A stretch of DNA of 64,000 bases. Origin: Paramoeba atlantica. Lineage: Eukaryota; Protista; Discosea. The notes beneath the pieces are model-generated. The model was given only the letters and a program-made list of their open reading frames with translations. It made no database searches and had not been told where the DNA came from. Positions 35,401 to 58,352 of this stretch are shown one piece after another (position 1 is the first letter of the stretch; each line of letters starts with the position of its first letter). The stretch spans positions 94,022 through 158,021 of the forward strand of contig CDRNVI010000137.1 in the NCBI GenBank assembly GCA_977017575.1, read 5' to 3'. Both the position numbers and the translations under genes were made by a program.

Positions 35401-38400
35401 TCTTAATTGTTTTGAATTGATGTATTTAATTTATTTTTTATTTTCTTTTTTTCACATTAATTTTTTGTAATTTCAATTTCTTAATTATGTCTCCATATTG
35501 AATGCAATTTCCTAATTTATTTTCTGATTCTGTGATATTTTTAGAACTTATATTTCAGATCTATGATATTTTTTAAGTTGGTTCAATAAAATTTCTTAAT
35601 TGTTTTTGGTTGATGTATTTGATTTATTTTTTGTTTCATTTTTTTCATATTATTTTTTTGTAATTTCAATTTCTTAATTATGTCTCTATATTGAATGCAA
35701 TTCCTTAATTTATTTTCTGATTCTCTGATATTTTTAGAACTTATATTTCAGATCTATGATATTTTTTAAGTTGGTTCAATCAAATTTCTTAATTGTTTTG
35801 AATTGATGTATTTAATTTATTTTTTATTTTCTTTTTTTCACATTAATTTTTTGTAATTTCAATTTCTTAATTATGTCTCCATATTGAATGCAATTTCCTA
35901 ATTTATTTTCTGATTCTGTGATATTTTTAGAACTTATATTTCAGATCTATGATATTTTTTAAGTTGGTTCAATAAAATTTCTTAATTGTTTTTGGTTGAT
36001 GTATTTGATTTATTTTTTGTTTCATTTTTTTCATATTATTTTTTTGTAATTTCAATTTCTTAATTATGTCTCTATATTGAATGCAATTCCTTAATTTATT
36101 TTCTGATTCTCTGATATTTTTAGAACTTATATTTCAGATCTATGATATTTTTTAAGTTGGTTCAATCAAATTTCTTAATTGTTTTGAATTGATGTATTTA
36201 ATTTATTTTTTATTTTCTTTTTTTCACATTAATTTTTTGTAATTTCAATTTCTTAATTATGTCTCCATATTGAATGCAATTTCCTAATTTATTTTCTGAT
36301 TCTGTGATATTTTTAGAACTTATATTTCAGATCTATGATATTTTTTAAGTTGGTTCAATAAAATTTCTTAATTGTTTTTGGTTGATGTATTTGATTTATT
36401 TTTTGTTTCATTTTTTTCATATTATTTTTTTGTAATTTCAATTTCTTAATTATGTCTCTATATTGAATGCAATTCCTTAATTTATTTTCTGATTCTCTGA
36501 TATTTTTAGAACTTATATTTCAGATCTATGATATTTTTTAAGTTGGTTCAATCAAATTTCTTAATTGTTTTGAATTGATGTATTTAATTTATTTTTTATT
36601 TTCTTTTTTTCACATTAATTTTTTGTAATTTCAATTTCTTAATTATGTCTCCATATTGAATGCAATTTCCTAATTTATTTTCTGATTCTGTGATATTTTT
36701 AGAACTTATATTTCAGATCTATGATATTTTTTAAGTTGGTTCAATAAAATTTCTTAATTGTTTTTGGTTGATGTATTTGATTTATTTTTTGTTTCATTTT
36801 TTTCATATTATTTTTTTGTAATTTCAATTTCTTAATTATGTCTCTATATTGAATGCAATTCCTTAATTTATTTTCTGATTCTCTGATATTTTTAGAACTT
36901 ATATTTCAGATCTATGATATTTTTTAAGTTGGTTCAATCAAATTTCTTAATTGTTTTGAATTGATGTATTTAATTTATTTTTTATTTTCTTTTTTTCACA
37001 TTAATTTTTTGTAATTTCAATTTCTTAATTATGTCTCCATATTGAATGCAATTTCCTAATTTATTTTCTGATTCTGTGATATTTTTAGAACTTATATTTC
37101 AGATCTATGATATTTTTTAAGTTGGTTCAATAAAATTTCTTAATTGTTTTTGGTTGATGTATTTGATTTATTTTTTGTTTCATTTTTTTCATATTATTTT
37201 TTTGTAATTTCAATTTCTTAATTATGTCTCTATATTGAATGCAATTCCTTAATTTATTTTCTGATTCTCTGATATTTTTAGAACTTATATTTCAGATCTA
37301 TGATATTTTTTAAGTTGGTTCAATCAAATTTCTTAATTGTTTTGAATTGATGTATTTAATTTATTTTTTATTTTCTTTTTTTCACATTAATTTTTTGTAA
37401 TTTCAATTTCTTAATTATGTCTCCATATTGAATGCAATTTCCTAATTTATTTTCTGATTCTGTGATATTTTTAGAACTTATATTTCAGATCTATGATATT
37501 TTTTAAGTTGGTTCAATAAAATTTCTTAATTGTTTTTGGTTGATGTATTTGATTTATTTTTTGTTTCATTTTTTTCATATTATTTTTTTGTAATTTCAAT
37601 TTCTTAATTATGTCTCTATATTGAATGCAATTCCTTAATTTATTTTCTGATTCTCTGATATTTTTAGAACTTATATTTCAGATCTATGATATTTTTTAAG
37701 TTGGTTCAATCAAATTTCTTAATTGTTTTGAATTGATGTATTTAATTTATTTTTTATTTTCTTTTTTTCACATTAATTTTTTGTAATTTCAATTTCTTAA
37801 TTATGTCTCCATATTGAATGCAATTTCCTAATTTATTTTCTGATTCTGTGATATTTTTAGAACTTATATTTCAGATCTATGATATTTTTTAAGTTGGTTC
37901 AATAAAATTTCTTAATTGTTTTTGGTTGATGTATTTGATTTATTTTTTGTTTCATTTTTTTCATATTATTTTTTTGTAATTTCAATTTCTTAATTATGTC
38001 TCTATATTGAATGCAATTCCTTAATTTATTTTCTGATTCTCTGATATTTTTAGAACTTATATTTCAGATCTATGATATTTTTTAAGTTGGTTCAATCAAA
38101 TTTCTTAATTGTTTTGAATTGATGTATTTAATTTATTTTTTATTTTCTTTTTTTCACATTAATTTTTTGTAATTTCAATTTCTTAATTATGTCTCCATAT
38201 TGAATGCAATTTCCTAATTTATTTTCTGATTCTGTGATATTTTTAGAACTTATATTTCAGATCTATGATATTTTTTAAGTTGGTTCAATAAAATTTCTTA
38301 ATTGTTTTTGGTTGATGTATTTGATTTATTTTTTGTTTCATTTTTTTCATATTATTTTTTTGTAATTTCAATTTCTTAATTATGTCTCTATATTGAATGC

Positions 38401-40083
38401 AATTCCTTAATTTATTTTCTGATTCTCTGATATTTTTAGAACTTATATTTCAGATCTATGATATTTTTTAAGTTGGTTCAATCAAATTTCTTAATTGTTT
38501 TGAATTGATGTATTTAATTTATTTTTTATTTTCTTTTTTTCACATTAATTTTTTGTAATTTCAATTTCTTAATTATGTCTCCATATTGAATGCAATTTCC
38601 TAATTTATTTTCTGATTCTGTGATATTTTTAGAACTTATATTTCAGATCTATGATATTTTTTAAGTTGGTTCAATAAAATTTCTTAATTGTTTTTGGTTG
38701 ATGTATTTGATTTATTTTTTGTTTCATTTTTTTCATATTATTTTTTTGTAATTTCAATTTCTTAATTATGTCTCTATATTGAATGCAATTCCTTAATTTA
38801 TTTTCTGATTCTCTGATATTTTTAGAACTTATATTTCAGATCTATGATATTTTTTAAGTTGGTTCAATCAAATTTCTTAATTGTTTTGAATTGATGTATT
38901 TAATTTATTTTTTATTTTCTTTTTTTCACATTAATTTTTTGTAATTTCAATTTCTTAATTATGTCTCCATATTGAATGCAATTTCCTAATTTATTTTCTG
39001 ATTCTGTGATATTTTTAGAACTTATATTTCAGATCTATGATATTTTTTAAGTTGGTTCAATAAAATTTCTTAATTGTTTTTGGTTGATGTATTTGATTTA
39101 TTTTTTGTTTCATTTTTTTCATATTATTTTTTTGTAATTTCAATTTCTTAATTATGTCTCTATATTGAATGCAATTCCTTAATTTATTTTCTGATTCTCT
39201 GATATTTTTAGAACTTATATTTCAGATCTATGATATTTTTTAAGTTGGTTCAATCAAATTTCTTAATTGTTTTGAATTGATGTATTTAATTTATTTTTTA
39301 TTTTCTTTTTTTCACATTAATTTTTTGTAATTTCAATTTCTTAATTATGTCTCCATATTGAATGCAATTTCCTAATTTATTTTCTGATTCTGTGATATTT
39401 TTAGAACTTATATTTCAGATCTATGATATTTTTTAAGTTGGTTCAATAAAATTTCTTAATTGTTTTTGGTTGATGTATTTGATTTATTTTTTGTTTCATT
39501 TTTTTCATATTATTTTTTTGTAATTTCAATTTCTTAATTATGTCTCTATATTGAATGCAATTCCTTAATTTATTTTCTGATTCTCTGATATTTTTAGAAC
39601 TTATATTTCAGATCTATGATATTTTTTAAGTTGGTTCAATCAAATTTCTTAATTGTTTTGAATTGATGTATTTAATTTATTTTTTATTTTCTTTTTTTCA
39701 CATTAATTTTTTGTAATTTCAATTTCTTAATTATGTCTCCATATTGAATGCAATTTCCTAATTTATTTTCTGATTCTGTGATATTTTTAGAACTTATATT
39801 TCAGATCTATGATATTTTTTAAGTTGGTTCAATAAAATTTCTTAATTGTTTTTGGTTGATGTATTTGATTTATTTTTTGTTTCATTTTTTTCATATTATT
39901 TTTTTGTAATTTCAATTTCTTAATTATGTCTCTATATTGAATGCAATTCCTTAATTTATTTTCTGATTCTCTGATATTTTTAGAACTTATATTTCAGATC
40001 TATGATATTTTTTAAGTTGGTTCAATCAAATTTCTTAATTGTTTTGAATTGATGTATTTAATTTATTTTTTATTTTCTTTTTT
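29420..40083. repeat. AT-rich satellite: 193-bp monomers in a 386-bp A/B higher-order repeat (~27 dimers)
   Basis: Monomer starts at 29701 (ctccata), 29894 (ctctata), 30087, 30280 ... 39737 = 29701+26x386. Monomer A has 37/193 G+C and no CpG. A diverged monomer lies at 29420-29700. Confidence 0.98.
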
Positions 40084-41312: not shown

Positions 41313-42930
41313 TTAACTTGTAATTTCACAAAGTAATTCATTTAAAGCATAATTTTTTCTAGTATGGGTTTTGAACATTGTCTTGGTAAGAATTATACAA
41401 TCTTCAACAATCACAATCTTTTTTATCATTGATCTAATACTTTGTATCCCTTTTAAGTAGTCTATAAATTCACCAATATTGTTAAAGCTAAGAGAAATGG
41501 TTTCAAACCCACCACATATTTCTCTCTCTTTCCTGAAAACTGCAAAATCTGCACCCCCCAGATGAAGGCCTGTATATCTTGAATCATTATAAAACATTTA
41601 AAAGCTTTTGAATTTAAAGTTTTTCTTCTTTTTAGGTTCTTTTTTGATTTGAGTTCTTGGAGGCTAAAGAAGGATTTTATTCTTTCTCAGGATTTTTCTA
41701 ACAATTTTTATAGTAAACTAAACTAATTTAGTTTCTTCTGCACACACTATGAGCCACAAACTTAGTAAGGCAGCACTCACCACAGAGGTTTCTTGTCTAG
41801 TAAAATACTTTGAGACAAGACCACATACATTTTTAGTTTCTTGCCAATTGAGTACTTTCAGCAAAATACATTTCCTTCCTCTTGCTTGAAGAAAACCCTC
41901 AACCACAAAGCATTTTTCCAGTAGATGAGATTATAACTCCTTTTCTCAGTGGCAGAGGCAACAACTTGAATCTTGGTTTGAGAAGTGAAACAACTTGTTT
42001 CTTGTAGATAGTTCTTTTATTAGAAATTTAAGTAAATTCTTCTTAAACTGAGGTTTAATTGCATGAACCAAGTTGTACACCACATACTCAGCTCTTCTTT
42101 TCCCCACATACAAGTCTTTGATTTCAATTGAAATCATTTGAGACATATTGGTATATGTAACACAAGTGGCCTGGCCAAACACAACTTTGGAAGAAAGGCT
42201 TTGGGCTGCAATGAAAGCATTCTTCCACATGGCTTCAATGGAGAGAGGATTCTAATAATCACTCTTCATTGGTGGACAAGAGGTGAAAAGAGCCCAATTA
42301 AAAACAATAGGGTGATGTAGTTGAGGATTTGAGTCCAAAGAGGATAGCATAAAGTAAGAACAGAGGTTTTAGTGATGGCATAGGCACCCAGGGCTGAGCA
42401 AATGGATTTCCACATCAAAGAGGTGATAGATTTTAGGATCAACTTGAATCTCACTAAGTATTCCATACATGGAGTTAGATAGATATTGACCATCCTCACT
42501 CTTGAGTAAAAATTCCCACCTCTCTTTTTAATTGCTGTTCCAACTTTCTTCATCTTTTGGACCACCTTCTCTCAATCTTTGAGAGAAGATAACCATTTAT
42601 TCAATCTCACTCCCAGTTTCATTACCACAGTAATTGAGTCTTGCCATCTCAGACCAGGGGCCTACTGGTTTGTAAGACTCAGTTGAGAGGACAAAGCACT
42701 TATTAAAGTTCAGTTTAGCTTCAGTTGCTTCTTTATATTTCTTAAAGGTTGGAGTGAGAGAATTGATGGTTTCAACTCTCTGAAGCACTATCCCCAAATC
42801 ATCCATAAAGCCTGACAGATCTTGGAGGTTGTGTTTCTTCTTCAAACTCACAAGGAGGATGTCAAACACAATCACAAACAATAGAAGGGAGATTGGGCAT
42901 CTTTGTCTAACTCCTGTCCAGCTTTGGATT
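41313..42930 (-). pseudogene. L1/Tx1-like non-LTR ORF2, C-terminal half of RT and downstream region
   Basis: GVRQRCPISLLLFVIVFDILL, GFMDDL and EATEAKLNFNKC are L1-type RT motifs B, C and D. CpG-free, many breaks. Confidence 0.8.
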
Positions 42931-43108
42931 GATTCTTTGGTGCCTGCCCTTTTGGATTCACTAATCACTTTGGGACAAAAAAATTTCTTGGGAGAGAACA
43001 TAGCCAGAGGTCAACCTGCATTTTTTGGCTCTGAAACACGACTGTGGAAGTGATGTGGCAAAGTGGATAGGCAAAAAAGACCCCAAAAAAACGCGGAAAG
43101 GCGAAAAG

Positions 43109-43910
43109 ATATGAACCCAATTGCCAAAAAGGATGATAATTGGGTTCTTTTTCACTCAAAATTTTTGGGTGGGATCAAGATGGCGTGGGAGAGGAGGAGG
43201 TGTTCTTTTTCAACTTCTCGAAATGGAAAACAAACTGATGATCGAAGATACTTGGGAGATTGAAGAATATCTCCATTTGATTCAGAAAGAGCAAAACACT
43301 TCAAATAGAAGAAAAAAAGCGAAAAAAATAGCAGGACCTGGTGGAAACAAACAAGACGAGATGACAATGCTGATGAATGAACAAATGGTTCATTGTGTTC
43401 TGGCACAAAGAATCCCAAAGACCCTCGAAAAATTGGTAAAAAACACTCTCATGAGTTTTTTTTTTTTCTAAAGATTCTTTTTTTCACTCACACACAAAAT
43501 TCTTTTAGTGGAGGGGAAAAGGTTGAAAACATTGGTGCTCTCGCCGGGTTTTCATTCAACATTTCCCTGAGGCCCTCTTTTTCTTTTTGGTCGATAATAA
43601 CGTTACCAAAACCAAAACAAATCGAAAAACCGGGAAGAAAGAATTTTGGGGACAACTTGATCTCCCTTCACAAATCCGAAAGAAGTTGGGGGTCATTGCC
43701 TACCAGAAAATTTTTCGGGATGGGTCCACTGCAACAGTGACTGGCCCTGTGAAAATCAAATTTTCACAGGAAAAAAAATTGTTGTCGATTTCTTATGGCT
43801 ATTTTCTTCAAAACCAAGATGGAAGGCCAGCAAAGGGGATGGCTGAAAACTGGAAACTCCCAGTAGTTGCCCCAGTTGTTGTTGTGAAAGAGGAGGCTCT
43901 CGACAAATAG
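43109..43910 (+). other. unidentified coding-like segment near the left end of the transposon (probably spliced, disrupted)
   Basis: Open frames 43121-43471 and 43587-43910 separated by a GT..AG intron-like tract (~43431-43509). No recognisable domain. Confidence 0.35.
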
Positions 43911-44073
43911 TGAAAAATAAATTATTTTTTTTATCCGAGGCACCGCCTTTTTTTTTTTTTTTTCTCTTGAGAAAAGACCAAAAAACAAAGCAGCTGCTTT
44001 GTTTCGTGACCCACTGAAGAAGAAGAAAAAGGAGGAAAAGACAGGGTTGTGTGTTGTGTTGTGTTGTGTTCAA

Positions 44074-47000
44074 ATGGCTGAGAGAGGAGTCTCTAGAAAG
44101 AAACAGTTGGTGTGTAGTCATTTGGTGCAGTTTTGTGTGAGAAGGAATGAGAAAAGTTCATGTGGAGTTTTCAGTTCAAAACAAGCCAAAAGTATTCATC
44201 AACGTTTACGCCATTATTGTCCAGATGAATGTAAGAGGTGTCAAAAAGAACAAGGTTTGAATTCTTTTCCTCTTCTTCGATCTTCAGTTTCAGAGAGTAG
44301 TTGGGTGGGTGGGTTTAAAGTTTCTGTTTGTCTTTTTTCTTTTTGGTGGGTTTGAAAGTGTTGCTATTCTGAAAGAATTTGGTGTTTGGAATTAGAAAGA
44401 GCTGCTGCTGCTGTTGATCAAACTGCTGAGAGTATGATGGGTATGGGAGCAATTCCTCAAGTTTTTCCACAACAAGGACAACAGGAACAGGTCTTTTTTT
44501 TTTGCAAAGAGAAGAGTCTTTTTATTCTTCAAGTCAAGTTAAGTGATGACACTGCAAGAAAAATAATTTTTGTTTTTTAGACTAGAAGAAGAGGTGGTAC
44601 CACCTCTGCTTTTTCCACCACCACCACCACACTCCCCATTGCTGCTTCCAACAGTACCTTTACCACCACCACCACCACCGCCACTTTTACTCCTCCTGTG
44701 ACTGCTTCTTGCCATCACCGTAGTTCCTCAGATGAGAAATTCCTCCGAACCAACTGGGTGAATGAAGCTGTGGGATCACTTGGTTTTGAAAATCCAACCT
44801 CTTTCTTGGCTCAGCTTTTAAGTGATTGCAACACTTCTCAGATTGTTGAAGTCTTAGAGAAACTCTTTCAGTTGGATGATGGAAATGCAAGAAGGGGGAG
44901 GAGTGGTTTTTCTCAGAAACAACAGATTAGAAACTTTTTTGGACTCCCAAATGATGCACAAGAAGTATCAAAAAAATATCGGTGTATGAAAAAACAGGAA
45001 AAGGCAGAGTTTTTTGGAAGATTGTTTCTAAGATTGGGTCTCACTAGGTATCAGATTCGAGGTCTTAATTCTGAACTGGGTTGGGAATTTTCAGATTGTC
45101 AGTTCAAGTATTGGTTCCAAAAACTAAAAGATCAGATTCCCTTGGAAAAAACAGACCATGGTTGGAGAGTGAATGATGTTGAGGGTGAAGTGAATAGAAT
45201 GTTTGATGATGATTGGGAGGGCAACAAGTATCCTCTTTGGGATGAATATGATCGGGTGAACAACAATATGAATCACCAAGAAGAAGCAACTATTGGTGGT
45301 GTTGCTAATGCAGAGGAAAATTTAAAGCTGAAGATGATCTTTTCTGCTGATGGGGGTTCTTTTGATCGAAGGAACAAAGGAGTTGTTGTGAAATTGATAC
45401 GTGGTGATGAAGAGTGGTGGGCAAAAGGAACTCGAACTTGGAGAGCAGTCCTCAATTTAAGTTTGGGTGTCTTTGTAATGAAAGAGAGCTTTAAAACCTT
45501 TCAAGAAGAGATATCTCCGATTTATCAGATGATTTACCAGATAAGTATTTTTTTGTAATGCTTTTAATTTAATTTAATATTAATATTAATATTAATTTAA
45601 TTTAATTTAATTTTTGACTTTTTTAATTTTTTTTTTTAAAAAAAATTAATTTAATTTTTCGTTTGATATTCATTTCATTAATTTTCTTCTCTTTTTTACC
45701 TACTTTTTCTTTCCCCTCTCTCCTCTCTCTTTCTTCTCTTGGGACTCTTTTGTGATTTTTATTAAAAAAAGATTCAGTATTCAGATTTCAAGGAATGAAC
45801 AATTTCATTCACTGAAACACATGACATGTTATGCTCTTCACTTCTTTTTGGTCATGGTGGCAAATCAATATTTCATCACACATCAAAAAGGCCTTGTTGG
45901 CGTTGTAACATTGTTCGAGATAAGGATGATAGAGGGCTTTGGGATGATCATACAAAGGTTTGCAGCTTCTTCCAAATTTTATTAAAATAATTTACTCCAT
46001 AAAAATGAATAAGAAAATAAAAGAAGAAAAATTTCAAAAATAATTAAGAAAAAAAAAATAATTTCAACTAAAAAAAATAATTTTGTTTTTACTAACATCC
46101 ACCCCCCACCCATATTTTTTTGTCAGCATCACTTTTGGGATAATCAATTTGGTGGTTATAGTATCTTTGAAAGTTTTGCTGAGGCTGATGATGAACTGGC
46201 AATTAATCTTGTTGGTAACTTGGATCAAAAACATACATGGTGAACTTTAGAACAAAAAAAAAGCGATTTTCAATTGGTTCAGGGCTGGGAGGGATCCAAG
46301 AACAGTCTTGCAAAATTTATGAATCAAATGGGAATGAGAAATCCTCCAATAACTCCATCGCAACCATGGGACCACAACTTGGACTTGATCCACTTTGTTG
46401 AAGGGACTTGTAGAAATGTTGTTAAACTTTTTGTGATGGATGTTTCTCTGTGTAAGTTAAAAAAAGAATATTTTGAAAATAATACTTTTGAAAAGAATAA
46501 AATTCTCATTGAAAAAGAAAATAGATTCACCTCATGATTTAACGATTTGAATTGCTTTTTATCTCATTGGAGGAGTGAAAATTCCAGATCCATCACAAAA
46601 GGTATTCAACCTTTGGGAGAGAATCAAAAAAGTAAGACCTAGTTACGTTCAATGGATCAAGATTTTAAGGGGTTTCCCCAATAAAACTGGTTGGTTTATT
46701 CTTCTCTTCTTTCTTTGATATCTTCTTCATTTTTAAAATTTTATAAATAATTATAATAAAAAAAAAATAATATTTTTTGAAATACTTTTTTTTTTTTTTG
46801 AATATCTTAATTATTACATTCTCTCTCTTTATTTTTCTACAACTGACAATATATTTTTGTTTTCAAAAAAAATCATTTATTTTAGCCTGAAAAGGAGCTG
46901 TTGATTTTCTTTATGATGAATATCTTATTAAATTAGCTGAATGGATGGATTCAAATCTCCAAAGTGAAAAAGTCAAAAGCATTTCACATGAACAAGAGGA

Positions 47001-50000
47001 ACCAGAAGTCCTTCCTTTTTCGGCGTTTAATGCAGCTTTGTTGAATGCAAAAGGTTGATTTACTATTTCTTGTTTTTTCCAAACAAACAAAAACTCTCTT
47101 TTTTTGATCAAATAATTTTATTCAGAAAAAAAAAATTTCAAAAGTTTTTTCATGATTTTTGTTATTCAGATTTTGATTTATCGATCATCGATGTTTTAAT
47201 TGGAGATTCAGAACGAGACACATTTGAACCAGAATATGAGTTTCTAACGTTGACTTATGACATTCTCCAAATGGCTTCAGCCCCATATCAACTCTCTCAT
47301 CAGAAGATCAATATTGTTCGAAAGGCTTCCCTTCTTTGGGGAAGAAAATATAACGAATGTAATTTCTCCCCTCTTTATTGGGCTCCTTATTTACATACCC
47401 TCCATGATCACCTTCATTGGGAGTTATTGAGGTTTGTTTTTTCTTTATTATTTTTGTGGTGTTGAAATTTTTTAAAAATGATGGTTCATAATATCCATCC
47501 TTCTTTTTTGATTTTCAGTTTTTCTGCAATACAGAATAAAGTCACTCCCCTCTGACATACACAACACAGATACCCTCTTCCACGAAGAGCAGGATTTGCA
47601 ATTGAAGGAGCCATTCTTGCAGCTCGTTCTCATTGTTGGGCCCAAAAGCCATTTGGAGGTAGACATAGGCAAGGAGTGAGCAGTCAAGAGAAAGGAACTT
47701 TTTCAATCCAAATGAATGCCTTGATCAAAGGGATGATGGAGCGAAGTGAGGCATTGAGATCAGAGAAAAAACTTGAAAACAGAGCAAGCAAAATAAGTGC
47801 AAATGAACCTTCTCGACTTATTCGTGAGGTATTTTTTGTTGACCCTTTTTTCCCCCAAATTTGTTGTTTTCTGAAAATTTCAAATTATTTTTTTTTAAAA
47901 TAAAATATGAAAACTCAAAAGCAGATTTCTAATAATTCTTTCCTTCTACCAAAATCAGGGTCACTCCTCAAAACTTGTTCCCTCTGGTTCTTCAAAGCAA
48001 CCCCCCCTCCTCAAAAGAACAAAATTACCTAATTCTGTTGCCTGCAAATCAGCTTATCAGTATGCTTCTTTGTGTTGCCAGCCCCTTCAGGATACTTTGG
48101 ATCCAATAACAAATTATCAATCCTCTTCTCATCGTCACAACATCCGCTCTTTCAACCCTTCATCACACTACATGTCTTCCCAAACCACTCCAATTAACCT
48201 CTCTTCCCCTTCCCCTTCCCCTTCCCCTTCCCCTTCCTCTTCCCCTTCCCCTTCCCCTCCCCCTTTCCTTTCTTCTCTTTCTCAATCACCAGGAAAAAAT
48301 TCTCAATTTTCTTTTTCCTATTCTTCCTTTCCTCTACCATCCCAAACATCCCAAAGTAATTTCTCTTCTTCCACTCATCTCTCAGGAAGTCCCTGTTCTT
48401 CACAGTCTTCTTTTCCTTCTCTTTCTGGTTCTTGTCCTTCTCCTTCTCTTTCTCCTTCTCCTTCTCACCAACCCTATACATCTTGGCCAACCATGTGTCA
48501 ATCATCTCAATCATCCCAACAATCCTGTATGGGAAGATTTTCTCTTTCTCCTCAGCAGCCTTCTCCTTCTCCTTCTCCTCCTCTTTCTTGCCCTTCTGTT
48601 TCTCCTTTTTCTTCTTTTCCTTCTCGCCAATCCTCTCATCAACCACTGCCTTTTCCTTCTCCAACTCCTTCTTCCCAAACCACATCCCCACATCCCCATG
48701 TTTCTTTCAGGAAGTTTCCCTTTTCTTTTTCCCCGTCTTTTGCATTTGCGACTCCCTCTCCCCCCCCATCATCAACCCCCAAAATGGTGGGTAATTTCTC
48801 ATCTTCATTTACTCATTTCCCAGTTCATTCTCATCATCCTTCTTTCTCTCCAAGTTCTCGTTTTTCACACTCACCATCTTCTTCATCTCCCTTATTGCCT
48901 TTTTCTCCTCAGTCATCTTCTTCTCTTTCTTTTTCTCTTTGTTCTCCTTTCTCTTCTCCTTCTATTTCTCATTGTTCTTCTTCTTTCTCTTTTTCTCCTT
49001 CTCCTTCTCCCCCTCCACCCTCTCTTTCTTCTTTCTCTCCTTTTGCTCCTTCCACTCCTTTCTCAGGAAGTTCCAGGAACTCTTCACACTCTTCTTTTCC
49101 TTCTCTATCTTCTACTTCTCGCCCCTTCTCCTCTCCCTGTTCTTCTCCTTATTTCTCTCCTCTTCTCTCTTCTCCCTCTCCTTCATCCTCTCCCTCTTCC
49201 TCTCCCCTTCTCTCTCCCTCCCTCTCCCCCTCTTCCTCTCCCTTTTCCTCTTCCTCTCCTCTTTCCTCTCTCTCAGTGAGAAATGCTCTTAAACTCGTTG
49301 AAATAAACGAACACCAAGCATTTCTTGCTTTGGAGCAAGAATATGCGCACATGATGACAGAAATACTCCCAAAGGTTTTTGTGATTTTTTTTCTTTCTCA
49401 TTGAGAGGAATGTTTCATTTTTTCATTTTTAGATTGATGAAGAAATTGAAGCTGGCCATTGGGACCCAATGGCTCGGGTTCAATGTATTCAAAAGATCAA
49501 AAAGCTGTCTTCTGCAAAATCAAACACCATCTACAATCATCTGATTTCTAATGCTATTCTTGTGCAAAATATGTGGTTCTTAGAGTTCCCAAACTAGGAA
49601 AAGATGAAGAAAGCAAAAAAATGGTTGAAGGAGACCGAAGTACCAATGAAAGACAACCTCAAGAATGTTTTGATTCCTGGTAAATGGGTGGAGGAGGAAG
49701 TTTGTTTTTTTTTCTTTTCTTATTTTTCATTATTTTATCATTGTTTTTATCATCTCATACCCAATATTTAGGTGGTTTCTTGGTACTGTCAGAGTTTGAA
49801 ATCCCGTTTTGTAGGAGCTCTCTTGGAATCTTTTCTTTTGGATCCACAAGTAAAAACTGATCAAAAACTCTCAAATCTTAGTCAAGTATTTTTTTTTCAA
49901 AAAATTTTTTTCAGAAATTAGAAAAAAGATTGGCAGCCAGAACATTTTTTTACCTATCAGTAATTTTCATTTTTCAGGTGATGATTTGGCAAAAAACAGG

Positions 50001-50682
50001 TTTTTATTGCATTTGTAACCCAGGAAATCACTGGGTTGTGATTGATGGAAAAATCGATGAGGCAAACAGAAAGGTTGAATTAACACTGTATGACAGTCTG
50101 AAGCAACAGCAAACAAATGACAAACCTCTCCAAGGTTTTTTGTGTTTTTTTTGTTCTTCTTTCCCTTTATTCTTCCAGTTACTGAAACTTTTTTATTTTT
50201 TTTTAATATTTTCAACAAAGATATTCAAGCTCTTTTAGAAAAACATTTTCAGGAAAGGTCTGAAGATAAGTTATCATTTCAAAGAAAAATTGCAAGTAAG
50301 GGGCCTGACCAGCAACAGGTTTTTTTTCTTGACTACCTGAATATAGATGGAGAATCTCTTGATTGTTATGTTTTATTTTTCATCCAAAACTGATTTCTTT
50401 CATTTTTTCTTTCAGAATGTCACAGAGTGTGGTGTTTTGGCTTTATTTACATTCTATTGTCTTACTCAGTCATATCCTCTGACTTTTACCCTTGCTGATT
50501 GTCCTGATATTCGTGAACATATTTTCTACAGAGTTTATGAGGAACTTCTTCCAGGTCAAACAGAAAAAAGGAAAAGGATGGATGAAGAGCGATTAAATGA
50601 ACCAAGAAGTACTGGAGTTCAAAGATCGAGAAGAAGCCAGCTGGCAACAAAGAGAAGGAAAACAACAAATCCATGGATTTGA
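44074..50682 (+). pseudogene. multi-exon DDE transposase (RAG1/Transib/CMC-like CCHH core) fused via Ser/Pro linker to Ulp1/C48 cysteine protease
   Basis: Spliced by eye with GT-AG introns. N-terminal C2H2-like finger; IFSADG (D, 45349); THDML..LFGHGG..PCWRC (D, 45823); GMRNPP..LDLIHFVEG; YLHTLHDH..LLR|YPLPRRAGFAIE (E). Then CNPGNHWVVI..LYDSL and QQQ|NVTECGVL (His 50029, Cys 50428). Four in-frame TGA (45796, 46241, 46548, 46888) plus lesions near 49560-49690. Confidence 0.8.
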
Positions 50683-50969
50683 TAATAAAAAATTACATTT
50701 CTTAAGAATTGCTCTTCTTCTTATCCCTTTCAAGTATTTTTTCTTTTCTTCTTTTCTTGGGGGGGGGGGGGGGGGGGGGGGGAACCTGTAGACAATAAAA
50801 TTTTTGGATTGTCTACAAGTCAGATTTTTTTCTCTTAATAAATTTGGTCCCCCACTCAACCCTCTCAACTTAAACTTCAGTTTTTCAAGACTGTTTTTTT
50901 ATTTACTAAGTTTTATTTATTTTTTACAGCTTTTTTTTTCTCAGACTTTTTTGCTTTTTTTGGGGTTGT

Positions 50970-51833
50970 TCATGACTCCATTGTTTCTCTTACCATTTCA
51001 CGCTTTGGGATTTTGCATGCCCGCAAATAAGAACGATGGATAATGAAAAGACCAACCATTCGATCATCTTCAGAAGGGCTTGATGGATCTTCTTCACCAT
51101 AATACCCACGAGTTCTGTGACATAACTGGTCAGTATCCAAAAGGAGAACATCCCCAATTCGAAGACCAAAAGCAATATCCAAACCACCAATCTCCAGTCC
51201 ACCAACTTGATGTTTCCCAATATGGATCATAACTAAGACAGAGAGAAAATCATTTTGGTCATAATGCATTTTGGCTGATCCTGCAGGGCACATGAATAAA
51301 TGAAACATCCCAAACTGTCCCTCAACATCGATTAATCCGTGTTTTTCCAGACAATTCCAAACATCAGGATGATACTTTTCCACCAATCTGGAAAGCTGCT
51401 TCCCAATTGATGTCAGAACAGAATCGAGAACTTTTTCGACTTCGACCTCGTAGTGGCCTCCTTTTCCAGCAGGATGAAAGGTATAATGTCCTTGTTGGGT
51501 CCATCCACCACAAAACATAAAAGCTCTCTCCCCTCTTTTTTTGTCAACTGAAGAGTCCCAATGTGTCTCTTGGCATGACAGCAAAGCTACTTGGAATTGT
51601 TTCATTTCTTCCTCAGTGAAAACCGATTTGAGGTAGTGTCCACGATAGCACTCCGTAACACGAGAATTTTTTTGGCGTTGGACCTCGAGGTACACAGACT
51701 CATTAATTATGAGACAGTGCTTCGAATGTTCCCAGTTTGGTTTTGTGGTTGCTTTCAGAGTTTTGTTCACAACTCTGAGTCCACAGCCTCTCTTTCTTTT
51801 TTTCGGCTCAGGATCATCAGGGTTTGAGGCCAT
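50970..51833 (-). CDS. TET/JBP-family 2-oxoglutarate/Fe(II) dioxygenase
   Basis: Intact, intronless ORF (287 aa from ATG 51833) with NLS PKKRKR. Motifs: HYDQND (HxD), VLVMIH..GGLEI..LRIGDVLLLD..LCHRT (distal His), DDRMVGLF (2OG-binding Arg), with spacing typical of Tet_JBP. Confidence 0.82.
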   Translation of the reverse strand: MASNPDDPEPKKRKRGCGLRVVNKTLKATTKPNWEHSKHCLIINESVYLEVQRQKNSRVTECYRGHYLKSVFTEEEMKQFQVALLSCQETHWDSSVDKKRGERAFMFCGGWTQQGHYTFHPAGKGGHYEVEVEKVLDSVLTSIGKQLSRLVEKYHPDVWNCLEKHGLIDVEGQFGMFHLFMCPAGSAKMHYDQNDFLSVLVMIHIGKHQVGGLEIGGLDIAFGLRIGDVLLLDTDQLCHRTRGYYGEEDPSSPSEDDRMVGLFIIHRSYLRACKIPKREMVRETMES

Positions 51834-52329
51834 TTTACGAGGTTGTTGTTTTGTACAAAAAAGGTTCCCAGTATTAAGCGGGCGCTGGTGAATCTCTTTT
51901 ACAACTTCCACAACTCAAAAGAAACTGTTCTGAAAAGAAAAAGGAGGGGGAAAAAGAAAAAAAGAACCATGACGCAGAAAACCGTGTCGTGGAAAAAAAA
52001 TTTTTCACAAGTTTTTTTTTGATGCTCTAAAAGGAAGCTTAGCACAGAAGCTTTTTTTTAAAGAGCTTTGAAAGGGACATGATCCATCTCTTCAAGCTAG
52101 TGAAAACAAATGCACCCCATTCCTGTTTTCTCATTCCCCGAAAACGATGTCACAGAACTGGCAAGAATGGGGGCTAATTAAATCAGGGCTGTGAAAAAAA
52201 ATAATTGTTTGTCTTTCATTTCTTTCATCACCTTGAAAAAACTCCGCATTGCAGAAAGTCATTCTTGACCTTTTCAGACTTTTTGTTTCTGGAAAAGTCA
52301 ATAGCAGGCAACAGAATACTACCCTGCAA

Positions 52330-52840
52330 TGAATTTTAACCCAAAGTGATTTAGCAGCCAGGTTACATATTCACAAAGGACTTTCTCAACAATATAGATT
52401 GCTTGAGGGGGGCATTCAGACTTTTGAGAATATGAAGGAGTGCATCACAATTCACATAATCATATGCCTTGCAAAAGTCTGTTTGGAGGAGAGTCACATC
52501 TTTTCCCTCTGCCAAAGCTTTGTAAAAAGAGTTATATACTGATTCTACTGCTTCATTAATTGATCTCCTGAAAATTCATAATTTCACCTGCTTGTTGAAT
52601 TAATTTTACTCACATATCAAAGTACTTCTCTTGTGTTGCCTTATACAAAAAGAAGGGAATACCATCAGGTCCTGTGCTGGTGTTGTTGGTTCTCTGAAGT
52701 AGTTTATCAACTTTCTTCCTATCCACATCATGTTTCTCAACTGGAAGGAAATGAGGTTGGTGGTCAGCAATCAGTTCATCAAGAGAATCTTTGTTATATG
52801 GTCTTTCTGTGCTGAGAAAACCCTCTCAAAAATCCTTAAT
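52330..52840 (-). pseudogene. L1/Tx1-like RT N-terminal half
   Basis: NTSTGPDGIPFFLYK at ~52670 and DF(AK)AYDYVNCDALLHILKSL at ~52480. Collinear with the C-terminal half at 42600-42930. Confidence 0.75.
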
Positions 52841-52904
52841 TGCTTTTTTAACCACATTATCATTATGAGAGATCACCCCATCCATGATTACATGTTGTTT
52901 TTAA

Positions 52905-53200
52905 CAAAAAGATGAAGACCATCTTTGCTTCAAGTTAACAGCTCTGTCAGGTCTGTTTGAATGAGTGTATAGTGGTATGGTTCTACAAATTGACTTCTAG
53001 TTGAATGTTTGTTCAAAAAGAAACCATATTTTTTTGGAAATGAACATCATATAATTGGTTGAAGGGAGACTAGAGTGATATTTTTTCTTGAAATTGTCAA
53101 GGGAAAGTTCCATCCTCTTGAAATTCCTGAAATGGGCTTGTTCAAGTTTCAACCTCTATCAGGTTTTGGAGTGAAAACTGTTGGTTTAATGCTTTACATG
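52905..53200 (+). pseudogene. decayed internal fragment of the piggyBac-like transposase, opposite orientation to the 56-58 kb copy
   Basis: IFFLEIVKGK..PEMGLFKFQPLSGFGVKTVGLML aligns to ILFLEIVEGK..PEMGLPKFQPPSGSGAKTVGLML at ~56930-57010. Confidence 0.8.
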
Positions 53201-55846
53201 AGAGTGAGCTTAAGCTGCACTTGCAATCATAGTGTTTTTAGAATTGAAGTGACTTCAAATATTTCTTTTGAGCTTTTAAAAAAAAATCTGATGTTATATC
53301 CATATGTTCACTCTTGTGGTCTCTTTTCTGATTTGTTTGTTTTTTGGTTGAATGAAGATGGTAAAGGTTGAAGAAATGGAACAAAAAAGAAAAAGAAAAA
53401 GGAAAAAAAGTGTGTGTTTATTATTCTTTTGATGATTAAATTGTTTGATTTGAAAGAAAAGGTTATGCATAGAAGTTGAAGGTGATGATGTTGTGAAAGG
53501 GAAAAAAAGAACCTGTTTTGTCAATTGATCCAAATAGAAACTCTTTCACTAGAGACTCCCATTCCTGGATGTATTCTCAGTGATTTTGACTTGACACTGA
53601 TTGTTTGAAGAAACTCTGATTCAAGTTCTTCTTCTTCTTCTTTATTGTCTGGGTCAATGCAACCTGATGTAAGCTCATGAAGAAAACACTGATCACAGTA
53701 GTCTTCAGTGTCTTTGGCTGAACATTGGAAAACTTTTGAAAGTGAAAGGAATTGGCCAAAGACACAACACTTGGTCCTCCCTCATCTCAACTTATGGCAA
53801 CATATAGCTTTTGAAATGTTCTCAAGTAATTGCATGAACCTGGTCCAGTGGTTTGCTCAATCTGACCAAACCCCTCCACCACCCAAAAGGAAAAGAGAAG
53901 AGGAAATTGACCTCCAAGCAGCAAAGAAGCAAATGCTGACACAACTCAATGAAATGATTGAGAATTGTAAGGACCTTAATGAACTCAAAAGAAAATTGGA
54001 CAAACAAAAATGATCCAACTGTTACTGTTCATCATAAGCAAGATAACAGTTTCACTCTCATCATTGGAGATCTGGAAAGAGATTTATTTTGAAACTTTGC
54101 TCCCCTGCTCAAACCAAACAAGAATTATCAGAAAACATGAGTCAACTTGCTTCCTCAACAAACAGTCATCATTTTAGGTCTGAGGTGTTGCATGGGTCAA
54201 CTTGTTCTCCAGTGTACACTCCAAGAGCCCACATCACTCAAGGCTTCAGCATTGGCCAAAACACTGAGTATGCAATTGATAGGTCAACTTTGTATAAGAC
54301 ATTTATTAATGCATCAATGGGTCAACTTTCAATTTCAGTTTCAAACACCAGGCCACTCAAGTGGTGATGCTCTCACTGAACCTTATCTGGAATGGAGGAG
54401 GATGTTGAGTGCACACACCCATGCCAAAACCAAATGTAGGGCACAAAAGAGTCACCCAAAAGATTAATGCTTTATCTGAGCAAGACTTAGTTTGAATAAC
54501 TGATGAATAAACTCCTAAGAAGAGGGGTAAGGACAAGCAGAGATATTGGAGAGGAAACAAAGCAATAGACCTGAATTGAACAAATGGCTGATTCATTTTG
54601 TAAACAAATGAGAAATCTTCTCTTGAATGGAATATTACCAGAATCAAAAATAGAAGCAAAGAATAATCAATTTTGAATTTCCAATCCTGTGTCCACAAGT
54701 TCATCTTGCATGATCTGACATCTTTAAAGTAAATTAAAAACCAAAGGAGAAGAAGGCAAAGAAGAAAGAAGGGGTAAGACAAGAGTGGATGAGGGGCAAA
54801 ATGGGGCACACAGGAGATGGACAAAAAGCACACACATCATCAGAAGGAATGCAATATCTCAAAAGATACCCTTGATTGAAGAATCTGAGCACTTTTTGCA
54901 CCTAAAAAGCACTCTTGTACCTCATCATTATAGTCACCATGATCAAATTCATGCAACATGGTGTGGAAGACCAGCTTGTGGAATTAATGAGGGGAATAGG
55001 GAGAAATGGAGAAAGAGAATTTAGGACTTGAGAAAGAAATAAAAGAGAGAGAGAGACACATGAGAATGGAAAGGATGAGAAAGTGAAATTTGATTTAGGA
55101 GAAATCTTCAATCCTATCAACAAGAACAGAAGAAAATGATTCTCTAACACCAACTTTAGGAAATCCAAGGATCTTGAGAGGTGGACATTATCAAATAAGG
55201 AGGTTCAAGGAGATTTCAAAGAAAGTGATGAAGAAATATAAACCCAAGAGGAGCAGACTAGTAATGCCAATCAGCTCAGTTGGCCAAAAGGATGAATATT
55301 TCCCCCCTTGATAAGGGTCACTGAGATCCTTAGGGGATGCAAGGGGGGGTCTGAATATTGAGACCTTTTGTCAAGCCACCTTTTGGGCAGTTAAGAGGAA
55401 GCAGCCAAGAACCTATTTGAATGTTGAATTGGCCCAATTGGTTCAGATTGCAATCAGAAAGAAAAGAAGATGGAAGATTGAGATCAAGATAAATAAGGGG
55501 GGGGGTTTTGGAGTTGGCTTGAGAAACTCTACTCCAAAAGGGGAAGAGACCAAAACCAAGGATAATCAAGAAGGATAAACAATGGAAAAGAAGGCCAGAG
55601 AAAGTACTCAAGAAGTATGCAAAGGAACAGGACAAAGAGGAGACTTCACCAACAGCAGCATTTCCACCCTTTTTGTACCAAAGAGAAAGATTGATCTGAA
55701 ATATGTGAACCACACAGCACAAAAACTGTGAGACTCTGGGAAAAATGTTTCACCATCTTCCAAAAGAAAAGAAAAAACCAGAAAAAAAGAAAAAACCAGA
55801 AAAACCAGAAAAAAAACAAATAAAATTGTTAAACTCTCCAGAAAAT

Positions 55847-58352
55847 TGGGTTCCTTCCAGGCCAAAAGACTAATTAGGCCTCTATTTTTGACTCTTTTTT
55901 TGAAGCCACTGGTGGGTGGAGGGGAGATTTTTTTTGATAAACTTTTTAATAAAGATCTTTTAAACAAGAATATCAAGAAATATTTGTCCAAATATTGTTT
56001 TTTGAAAAAAAAAATTGAGTCACTAAAAAAAAAAAAACATCATTTTTCAAAAGGACTAATTAGTCCTCAGTCATGTGCCTGCTCATATGGTCAGCAAAGC
56101 AACCTGAACAAAAAATGAGTGTTTGATCACAGGAGCAATAGGTTTGAACTTTCTTTGTACAATTTGTCCCATTGCATCCTACTCTTCTGGTACTCTTGTC
56201 TGGCTTCAGTCCAATTACCATTTCACCAAACTCCAGCAAAGTTGGGCTTGATCATCAGATGATGTTCTACATGAGTTGGGAGTGGTATTCGCAGGTTATA
56301 GCTTTCATCCAAGGGATGATTCTGAGAGAGTAGACCTTGGGCAACCTCAAAACGAAATTCTGCAAAGGAGAGCTCTTTGGCTTGGGGGAAAAAGTGCTGA
56401 AATATGAGGAAGGCATTGACTTCCACAACTACAAGAATGAAAGCAAACTGCCTGTGGACCCATTTTTTGGTCTTCCAGGAACTCTCCAAGGAGAGAGAAC
56501 CTTGCCTCAGTTGGTTGTGATCATCCACACAATGCCTGGTTTGATAGTAAAAGTCAAGAGGCTGAGTATATCACAGGGAGAGTCTTTGGCCTTCAAGCTT
56601 GCAATTTTGTAGGCAACCAGTGGGAAAAGAAGTTCCCCAGGTATTAATCATTATAGAAGAGTGATGAACATCTTGGAAAGCCTCCACATAGAATTTATAA
56701 CCTCTCAGAGATCCTTTCTTCACTTTCACACATAACCAGGTTCCTTCTCCTTGAGGTGTGTAACAATCTCTTTCCCTGGAATTCCTTTGGGCCAATATCA
56801 TTTTTTCTTCACAACTGAAGTACAATACAATCCCTTCTCCAAGAAGTTGAATACAACCTTCCAACACACAAAAACCACTATCCAAAGCAACTACTCGACC
56901 AGTTCCCCAAATTCCCTCAGTCATTCTAAGCATTAAACCAACAGTTTTCGCTCCAGAACCAGATGGAGGTTGAAACTTGGGCAGGCCCATTTCAGGAGGA
57001 TGGGACTTTCCTTCCACAATTTCAAGAAAGAGTATCACTTTAGTCTCCCCACAACCAATTGTATGATATTCATTTCCAAAAGGATGAGGTTTCCTCTGAA
57101 CAAACATCCAACCAGGAGCCCATTTACAGAACCACACCACCATAGACTCATCTAGACAGACCTGTCAACTTGGAACAAAGATGGTCTTCATCTTCTCATT
57201 AAAAGCAGCAATCAGGGGTCGAATTTCCCACATACAGTCTGTGTAAGAGGGTTTTGCAGAGAGAGGAGCAAGTTTAAGAGAGGAGACAATCATATCAAAC
57301 CAATTTCTACTGATATATTTCCTAAGATAAGGCAGTGTACCATGCAAGGAAGATCCAGCTGAATCCTTTGAAATTCGAAAAAAATCCCTTCTTTTATGTC
57401 CTGGGTAGAAAGACATAATCTGGCACAAGGCAATAAAATCAAGCATTTCAGCTTCAGTGAAGTTCAAAGAATGGTTAAACTCATTTGTTGCTTTCAGCAC
57501 ATCAGTTTTTAGAAAGGTTAGAGGTAGAACTTGGAGAAAAATATCGAGGGGAGTGGGGACATAAACAGCATCAAAGCGAATTCTTGTACAGGCCTTGAAG
57601 TCTTGTGCTCCTATCACAGCACAAGCATCAGTTGTTGAGGAAGACCACTCAGAAACACAAAGGAAAGATCATTTTCAACGAGTTCTGCTGCATTGTCTTC
57701 CCCTTCCTCCTCAATATCAGAGCAAGATTCAGTATCTTCATCATCAGTATCAGATGAGCCCAAAACAGGCACAGAGGTTGTTGATGCCTGGGATGAACCA
57801 GAACTTGATCCTCCTGAGCCAGAAGAGGATGATGAAGATGAAGATGGATGAGTTGAAGTCCCACAACCCTCTGAGACATCTGCTTCTCCAACAAACTTCA
57901 AATTTTCAGGAAGAGCCAGAAGGTAATCATTCTGAAAGACAGGAGAATGAAGCAAAACTACCATCTGAGATTTCCTGTCATAGTTCTGAAGTTCCACCCT
58001 TTTCACCCTGAGTGAAGAGAGAGATGCTCCTTGATATTGGTCACCAAAATGTTTCCTTAGAAGATGAGAAGGGCAAAGGTTCACAGCTTTGCAGAACCAA
58101 ATAGTATCCTCCTTCAATTCTTCAATTCTTGGAGAAGTTGATCTAGAACTCATTTTTCTCACCACTGTAACTTTTTTCATTCAGACTTTCTGAGAAAGGC
58201 ATTGTGATGAAAATCAAGAAAAAACCTCAAAGAAACACAAAAGAAAGTAAAAAAAAAAAAAAAAAAGTTCAAAAATGTGCTTTATTTTGGCCAACAAACA
58301 GGAGCCTAATTAGGCCCAAAAAGACTAATTAGGCCCCCCTGGAAAGAACCCG
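55847..58352 (-). mobile_element. piggyBac-like (DDE_Tnp_1_7/PGBD-type) DNA transposon with 15-bp TIRs
   Basis: TIR tgggttccttccagg (55847-55861) vs reverse complement cgggttctttccagg (58338-58352). Subterminal CTAATTAG palindromes at ~55870, 56056, 58306 and 58324. Confidence 0.7.
56060..58180 (-). pseudogene. piggyBac-like transposase, frameshifted
   Basis: Acidic N-terminus; RKPHPFGNEYHTIGC, VVALDSGF and VDDHNQLR (DDD core); C-terminal Cys-rich CNGTNC..YCSC..FCSGCFADH. Confidence 0.85.

Follow-up and report, generated by a model that had tools for sequence, protein, structure and literature searches.

The window analysed here is a 64,000-nucleotide stretch of Paramoeba atlantica DNA (contig CDRNVI010000137.1 of assembly GCA_977017575.1, forward-strand positions 94,022 to 158,021). 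It contains, at positions 42966-52348, a whole but decayed copy of a DNA transposon of 9,383 bp, whose limits are defined by homology breakpoints against independent copies. The region is eukaryotic in character, with ~37% GC and short AT-rich GT-AG introns, and the element carries, between inverted-repeat ends, a candidate small upstream gene, a spliced transposase gene that probably continues into an Ulp1/C48 protease domain, and a convergent gene for a TET/JBP-like protein. Loci for comparison were found via the contigs of the TET relatives and via transposase fragments from an exhaustive phmmer search. Eleven of them come from ENA assembly ERZ24900291, apparently of the same organism, L004 from a JGI metagenome, and L008 from another assembly (ERZ25071330). 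The copies fall into a variant A (window, L001, L002) and a variant B (L003, L009, L012). The element and the degraded long interspersed nuclear element (LINE) that hosts it comprise the following features:

41422-42965, minus strand: insertion host, 3' part of a degraded LINE open reading frame (ORF) 2, from the FMDD reverse-transcriptase motif onward (Pfam RVT_1, E=5e-9; colinear with L010 1245-2801)
42966-42974, plus strand: left terminal inverted repeat CACTTTGGG, then ACAAAAAAATTTC; kept in L005, L006 and L011
43223-43435 + 43572-43910, plus strand: candidate small upstream gene (183 amino acids), its two exons separated by a 136-bp GT-AG intron, ahead of the transposase gene
44074-47828, plus strand: transposase part, exons 1-9 (44074-44237, 44376-44490, 44581-45544, 45785-45957, 46127-46451, 46576-46689, 46895-47053, 47170-47431, 47570-47828)
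45796-45798, plus strand: nonsense codon TGA in exon 4; CGA in L009
46241-46243, plus strand: nonsense codon TGA in exon 5; TGG in L009
47959-49374, plus strand: exon 10, a Ser/Pro-rich low-complexity linker of ~470 amino acids that would join transposase and Ulp1; frame open throughout
49433-50682, plus strand: Ulp1/C48 protease part, exons 11-15 (49433-49687, 49772-49885, 49978-50134, 50221-50318, 50416-50682)
49595-49597, plus strand: nonsense codon TAG in exon 11; CAG in other copies, and 49595 T>C in all contigs of DNA runs X2-X4
50970-51833, minus strand: TET/JBP-like 2-oxoglutarate (2OG)-Fe(II) dioxygenase gene, predicted, single exon of 287 amino acids, tail-to-tail with the transposase-Ulp1 gene
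52340-52348, minus strand: right terminal inverted repeat CACTTTGGG, read on this strand, then TTAAAATTCATTGCAGGG; kept in L001, L003, L009 and L012
52349-52892, minus strand: insertion host, 5' part of the same LINE reverse-transcriptase ORF with its KAYD motif (colinear with L010 510-1244)

In nine junctions homology between copies breaks exactly at the element ends, and the flanks are unrelated every time. The left end at 42966 marks the onset of homology in L005 (junction at 8714) and, within alignment tolerance, in L006 (7749) and L011 (3272), while homology stops at the right end, 52348, in L001 (9424), L003 (4010), L009 (9176), and L012 (4314). Contigs of the DNA runs have loose ends with mixed continuations at 52348 and hundreds of them match the element at 90-99% identity; therefore, the family is multi-copy. 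Both ends read 5'-CACTTTGGG inward and form an inverted repeat that is perfect over 9 bp and continues in a looser, A-rich similarity, so that all nine junctions display termini of the 5'-CA..TG-3' type (CACTTTGGG...CCCAAAGTG). The adjoining bases are T, A, A, G and T, C, C, T, G at the nine ends, hence not TA, and the window element itself is flanked by CTAAT and ATTTA. The heptamer-like terminal CACTTTG shares CAC..TG with CACAGTG and is followed 2 bp on by an A-run at the left end only; inspection of the termini gave no evident 12/23 spacer asymmetry. Contigs break inside the element in L001, L002, L003, L005, L006, L009, L011, and L012, and a motif scan of 205 kb of sequence contained no short derivative with both ends.

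These boundaries replace those of an earlier note on this DNA, which had let the element run from a CACGAC at 43037-43042 to a GTCGTG at 51986-51991 (both given on the plus strand) with GAAA on either side. The sequences are present, but neither hexamer is a terminus. The true left end lies 71 bp further left, where homology in L005, L006, and L011 begins, and GTCGTG is conserved inside copy L001, which remains 96% identical for ~360 bp past 51991. A 6-bp inverted match beside an A-rich tetramer is by itself weak evidence.

The empty site is provided by an uninterrupted paralogous LINE in L010, whose positions 1244|1245 are the counterparts of window 52349|42965. Once joined, the two window flanks align with L010 gap-free for ~60 bp either side and restore the LINE reverse-transcriptase frame (...VTWLLN|ISESKRAGTKESIQSWTGVRQRCP...). 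As window bases 52349 and 42965 are adjacent in this empty site, nothing was duplicated at insertion: in the single insertion that is testable, the target-site duplication amounts to 0 bp. Thus, the earlier reading of GAAA as a 4-bp duplication has to be dropped, and so does its argument from Chapaev- and ProtoRAG-style ends, the hexamers being internal and nothing being duplicated. The search for further copies and an empty site, which the same note had proposed, did yield independent copies and L010, but with boundaries that differ from those claimed and no 4-bp duplication. We also discarded a 2-bp 'AT' duplication, since the empty site already holds ATAT and the LINE reading frame argues against it as well. 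The insertion is hosted by a LINE family (RVT_1, zf-RVT), and other element copies (L001, L002) are also located in or beside LINE sequence; this association of several copies suggests a nested, repeat-rich region.

The transposase-Ulp1 gene is modeled with 15 exons on the plus strand (44074-50682), with GT-AG at 14/14 introns and the phase kept throughout. Introns 47054-47169 and 47432-47569 are supported by RNA contigs (run X1), and two intron positions are conserved in the distant relatives L007 and L008. When mapped onto copy L009, exons 2-10 encode 942 amino acids with no stop and with conserved splice sites. On these grounds, the spliced DDE transposase proposed earlier holds and lies on the plus strand; the exon 1/2 junction is the least certain of the transposase part. 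The predicted protein starts with a Cys/His zinc-finger-like N-terminus, followed by a helical region, the DDE core, the linker, and the exons with the C48 boxes. The core motifs appear in the order SADGGSFD (D1), ETHDM (D2), CWRC, LDLIHFVEG, HTLHDHLH, and AIEG (E), and the same order is found in the stop-free L009 copy. Distant transposase homologs from metagenomes and the same assembly (P0010-P0017 and P0021) share motifs with the window protein: P0010-P0017 retain the Asp and CxxC motifs, and the exons that follow in L007 and L008 retain the His-rich and Glu motifs. Assigned by motif, D1, D2, and E are the putative catalytic residues of the transposase.

Downstream, on the same strand and in frame, the later exons contain the His/Asp and Cys boxes of an Ulp1-type protease, the domain that the earlier note had placed in this gene. 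The boxes follow the expected His-Asp-Cys order, HW...DS and then Q..N..[DE]CG. Exon 13 carries NHWVVIDG...LYDSL (His, Asp), and QQQ|NVTECGV (Gln, Cys) spans exons 14/15; variant B, although only 35-41% identical, retains NHW, YDSL, and TECG. In the language-model features of a protein atlas, Peptidase_C48 accounts for 77/100 top named clusters of the 52-residue exon 13, with a best score of 0.83. Single Ulp1 exons, 30-88 amino acids long and too short as queries for Pfam, gave no Pfam match, Peptidase_C48 included, and no PDB sequence match.

We consider it probable that transposase and Ulp1 are fused in one gene. Only one frame is open along the whole linker of ~1.4 kb, and it is the one that fits the phase of both exon 9 and exon 11; variants A and B agree in this, despite indels. 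The linker is CT-rich, so that an open frame by itself means little: CT-rich DNA is poor in stop codons in any frame. Ulp1 could then be a separate gene, with the transposase ending soon after exon 9 and the Ser/Pro 'exon' being a CT-rich spacer. Unspliced, exon 9 reaches a TAA at 47901, Met codons are available ahead of exon 11, the spacer is only ~71-73% identical between the variants, and the RNA run shows nothing over this region. Nevertheless, we judge a separate Ulp1 gene to be the less likely arrangement by some distance, given that the sole open frame is the one that fits both neighboring exons in both variants and that the GT-AG sites agree with the spliced model.

The convergent ORF displays the HxD (MHYD) and distal His (QLCH) of 2OG-Fe(II) dioxygenases, and H215, D217, and H264 are invariant across six TET paralogs, down to 37% identity. 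Its atlas features score 0.96 (203/256 shared), with 73/100 matches in Tet_JBP clusters. In Foldseek, its model reaches the best TM-scores with CcTet (0.43-0.46), NgTET1 (0.43/0.50), and TET2 (0.45), compared to ~0.3 for other 2OG oxygenases. The ORF has no Pfam match at E<=1, Tet_JBP (PF12851) included, and the PDB sequence search was also empty. Only four sequence relatives are present in the protein database, from ERZ24900291 and one metagenome, and none is close in fungi. Motifs, features, and modeled fold together point to a TET/JBP-like protein, a predicted dioxygenase. The tail-to-tail TET/JBP ORF reported earlier is hence in place but not fully intact, as a premature TGA truncates the window version 19 codons before the basic C-terminal tail that P0001 and paralogs retain.

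In the candidate small upstream gene, exon B shares 64-65% protein identity with the diverged subfamily L006 and L011, and exon A 36-65% with L005, L006, and L011; neither Pfam nor PDB sequences gave a match. Among the ORFs within the element, there is no further long one besides the listed genes and no Kelch/RAG2-like gene.

The window copy is dead, with three nonsense codons in the transposase-Ulp1 gene and the premature stop in TET. A reading of TGA as a sense codon is ruled out by CGA and TGG at those sites in L009, plus the presence of a TAG stop. The TGA stops at 45796 and 46241 (versus L009) and the TAG at 49595 are of the C>T/G>A type, and the differences between copies run in the same direction, in all dinucleotide contexts. 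Transitions outnumber transversions by 58:1, 229:5, and 121:8 in the comparisons of the window with L001, L002, L005, and L009, and CpG observed/expected is 0.32-0.34 both in the element and in the whole window. Judged from these substitutions, the decay pattern fits methylation/deamination, that is, a repeat-induced point mutation (RIP)-like or deaminase-like pressure on repeats.

Variant B covers L009 9176-17420, L012 4314-13461, and L003 4010-5344. Compared to variant A, the right terminus and the transposase (44306-48433) are each 95-97% identical at the nucleotide level, the distal linker ~71-73%, the Ulp1 exons 35-41%, and TET 38%, the latter two in protein identity. Since a near-identical transposase is combined with Ulp1 and TET parts that are only 35-41% alike, the three-part architecture is old and conserved. 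Ulp1 and TET thus appear to constitute a cassette that was exchanged as a unit, presumably by recombination, onto the same transposase backbone. The architecture is kept in both variants, and the central proposal of the earlier note, a genuine DNA transposon linking a RAG1-like transposase, Ulp1, and a convergent TET, is corroborated. A more distant subfamily (L006, L011) has 56-60% protein identity and shares the left end and the upstream ORF. TET or Ulp1 was not detected in the paralogous families P0012/L007, of the same assembly, and L008, of another organism.

These paralogous families have features of their own. L008 1-14540 consists of tandem units of ~6.4 kb, each with a related transposase gene that ends in a C-terminal SAP domain instead of Ulp1; the units also hold two minus-strand ORFs of ~690 and 260-340 amino acids. 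In L007 (941-19386), the P0012 transposase resides in a block of ~16 kb that is flanked on either side by a set of Peptidase_S10 gene fragments, and this block may be an insertion that split a Peptidase_S10 gene. In L005, a diverged element copy has itself received an insertion at 10574-11986, a DDE_1 ORF of pogo/Tigger-like type with a weak Pfam match.

The fold of the transposase was assessed with an AlphaFold model of paralog P0012, which is 24-26% identical to the window transposase. In Foldseek against the PDB, the top 22 matches of this model are all HzTransib or RAG1, with a best E of 0.016 at a probability of 0.99. In VIA-align, entries of RAG1, HzTransib, and BbRAGL occupy the first 29 places (Z 6.4-8.8), followed by a next entry at 4.0 and Hermes at 2.5. 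The alignment spans model residues ~190-507 and RAG1 residues ~460-994, from the DDBD to the ZnH2 regions. Among predicted structures (ESM-Atlas), unnamed Mucoromycota proteins, DUF1280, Transposase_21, Plavaka, and RAG1 are neighbors with comparable scores. The atlas features of exon 3 return the same mix, with DUF1280, RAG1, and Transposase_21 clusters, and the structural neighbors of the transposase in AFDB include one nematode protein with a CxC1 domain. We know of no solved structure of a CMC-type (CMC, EnSpm, or Mirage) transposase; therefore, the PDB match places the family in the wider CMCT clade and not specifically in Transib. This clade comprises EnSpm/CACTA, Mirage, Chapaev, Transib, Plavaka, and ESTA, and RAG1 arose from it as well. 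On the model-based evidence, the transposase is best assigned to the CMCT clade at this level. Of the RAG1/Transib-like transposase announced in the earlier note, the RAG1-like fold stands, but the specific Transib/RAG affiliation does not, with DUF1280, Transposase_21, and Plavaka equally close and no Pfam RAG1 match. CMCT elements are described as having 5'-CA..TG-3' ends, duplications of 2-5 bp, and a transposase with C(2)C and H(3-4)H motifs (PMC12730594). The element presented here exhibits the motif order, the RAG1/Transib-like fold, and the CA..TG ends, and differs in lacking a 2-5 bp duplication in the one testable insertion.

Sequence searches placed few relatives beside the family. 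Pfam scans of all exons and distant homologs returned no transposase, TET, or C48 family. Pfam RAG1 families matched neither exon 3 (E<=1) nor P0010-P0015 (E<=0.1), and the Plavaka and Transposase_21 models matched neither the transposase exons nor the homologs. A hidden Markov model (HMM) of the family hit no RAG1 or Transib chain in the PDB; phmmer and the HMM against PDB sequences gave weak C2H2 zinc-finger matches only. The exhaustive phmmer search with the transposase produced 11 matches, all fragments or unnamed. A profile search of a set of 5.8 billion proteins added two relatives only, and a scan of JGI metagenome contigs found no relative.

Taken together, window 42966-52348 very likely represents one decayed copy of a multi-copy, autonomous cut-and-paste transposon of the CMCT clade that carries Ulp1 and TET. 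Several points weigh against this reading or parts of it. The P0012 model is of low confidence (pLDDT, the predicted local distance difference test, of 55) and depicts a paralog, not the window protein, and no sequence profile ties the transposase to a named family, neither in Pfam nor with the family HMM against PDB sequences. By motif alignment, the putative catalytic Glu would correspond to E959 of RAG1, and not E962. The Ulp1 call is based on motifs and language-model features, whose best score stays below the tool's guide value of 0.9. The exon 9-10 junction, and hence the fusion, is without RNA support, the RNA run showing no reads over Ulp1 or TET. The AlphaFold model of TET is likewise of low confidence (pLDDT 52, predicted template modeling score 0.59). 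The zero-bp duplication rests on one insertion, only the window copy having both ends on one contig. Finally, no complete intact copy is among those seen, and any current activity is hypothetical.

It is possible, though we put it forward only tentatively, that the family represents a separate, undescribed CMCT/RAG1-related lineage without target-site duplication, the first TET transposon family outside fungi, with an exchanged Ulp1+TET counter-silencing cassette. The earlier note knew of no described element with this combination, but the view that nothing comparable has been described is not supported, as TET-carrying transposons are known in fungi from many superfamilies, including the CMCT groups EnSpm, Plavaka, and ESTA (Kojima 2025, PMC12730594). 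This survey covers fungi only and makes no mention of Ulp1 or SUMO, and we found nothing specific in the literature on Transib or Ulp1 fusions in protists. Apparently new are therefore the non-fungal host, the probable transposase-Ulp1 fusion, the swappable Ulp1+TET cassette, and the absence of a duplication, the latter in one insertion.

The element could instead be the first non-fungal member of one of the described TET-carrying lineages, ESTA, Plavaka, or TET+ EnSpm. With these it shares a DDE transposase whose second Asp and Glu enclose C(2)C and His motifs, CA(C)...(G)TG termini, a TET/JBP gene inside the element, and hosts with C-to-T decay of repeats. It also shares a resemblance to RAG1 in structure-aware comparison, the ESTA transposase resembling RAG1 by HHpred; the described CMCT groups have 5'-CA..TG-3' ends and C(2)C plus H(3-4)H motifs (PMC12730594). 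ESTA consensus sequences begin with CACCAC, and Plavaka and Transposase_21 clusters occur among the structural neighbors. In contrast, ESTA is defined by TA and EnSpm by 3-bp duplications, whereas the one testable insertion here shows 0 bp and the flanks are not TA. The termini read CACTTTGGG and not CACCAC, and the Pfam models of Plavaka and Transposase_21 detect no similarity. Moreover, unnamed Mucoromycota and DUF1280 proteins make up the closest structural clusters, the host is a protist, Ulp1 is probably fused to the transposase, and the TET represents another, highly divergent type without a close fungal relative, its four sequence relatives being restricted to ERZ24900291 and one metagenome. 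Membership in a described lineage therefore seems unlikely, judged from the published descriptions and the Pfam profiles of ESTA, Plavaka, and EnSpm as far as these were compared.

Still less probable is a true element of the Transib/RAG lineage that is laid out like ProtoRAG, with TET in the position of RAG2L. RAG1, HzTransib, and BbRAGL are the best and only solved structures that match, the atlas features include several RAG1 Pfam clusters, and the motif order DGxxD, D, CxxC, D/E-x-L-H, HxxxxH, E is similar to that of Transib and RAG1. The ends begin with CAC, CACTTTG resembling CACAGTG at CAC..TG, and the accessory gene is convergent as in ProtoRAG. However, with no solved CMC-type structure known to us, a match in the PDB does not distinguish Transib from the other CMCT groups, and the DUF1280, Transposase_21, and Plavaka neighbors score at least as high as RAG1. 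The convergent layout is a weak character. Unlike Transib, ProtoRAG, and RAG1, the element combines the lack of a Pfam RAG1 match, of a 5-bp duplication, and of a Kelch/RAG2-like protein with extra Ulp1 and TET parts and many introns. A segmental duplication of host genes in place of a mobile element is hardly credible, as nothing speaks for it beyond the fact that only one copy has been seen with both ends, and it is refuted by nine junctions stopping at the same base in unrelated flanks, by the inverted-repeat ends, and by a paralogous LINE that lacks the block exactly at those bases.

In the favored reading as a CMCT transposon, the transposase would be an RNase-H-fold DDE enzyme with N-terminal zinc fingers, in which a CxxC and a His-rich motif separate the second Asp from the Glu. 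It would act by binding to the CACTTTGGG ends, cutting the element out, and inserting it again. The same gene would most likely continue via the long Ser/Pro linker into a C-terminal Ulp1/C48 deSUMOylase domain, and the small upstream gene and the convergent TET/JBP gene would complete the element. TET may oxidize 5-methylcytosine on the element or genome-wide and thereby oppose methylation-based silencing and C-to-T decay, and Ulp1 may strip SUMO off chromatin or silencing factors, or act in this way on the transposase. We infer this anti-silencing role of Ulp1 and TET, which the earlier note had also put forward and which is plausible, in the same way as all enzymatic activities and the fusion transcript.

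Ulp1-like proteases reportedly accompany transposases of Zisupton/KDZ and of plant Mutator-like (MULE) and CACTA elements, and KDZ elements are said to be associated with TET/JBP genes in basidiomycetes. The element resembles these systems in pairing a DNA transposase with an Ulp1/C48 protease, be it by association or by fusion. Unlike in KDZ, Pfam scans return no transposase family, the fold neighbors are CMCT, and there is no 8-bp duplication; unlike in Zisupton/KDZ and MULE/CACTA in general, Ulp1 and TET are found together in one element and appear to be swapped as one cassette. With regard to the target site, a precedent exists in the Spy elements of the PIF/Harbinger group (Han 2014, cited in PMC12730594), which insert without target-site duplication. 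Spy elements are likewise DDE cut-and-paste transposons without a duplication (here seen in one insertion only), but their transposase belongs to an unrelated superfamily and their ends are different.

Capture of TET/JBP genes by DNA transposons has so far been documented only in fungi, where it is read as an escape from methylation silencing. If the family is indeed a separate lineage, transposon capture of TET would have arisen independently in a protist under methylation or deamination pressure, and the protist case suggests a recurrent solution to a cytosine-methylation or deamination defense. Here, TET accompanies a RAG1-related transposase that is probably linked to a SUMO protease, and the repeats of the genome exhibit strong C-to-T decay and CpG depletion. 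The family would form a deep and intron-rich branch close to the RAG1/Transib/EnSpm radiation and would help to trace the evolution of the catalytic core. If confirmed on more copies, the missing duplication would reveal a DDE element that integrates without staggered target cuts. One transposase with two very different Ulp1+TET cassettes also offers a natural experiment on whether the accessory activities cooperate.

The surroundings of the element contain further repeats. To its right, there are dispersed repeats at window 52893-53194 / 56928-57210 and at 53214-53540 (compared with L005 13466-13795 and L012 2910-3202), which other contigs share at 79-88% identity. To its left, window 30001-40000 forms a 10-kb block of only 18.5% GC in which the AT skew is strongly negative; this block is presumably a satellite or tandem array.

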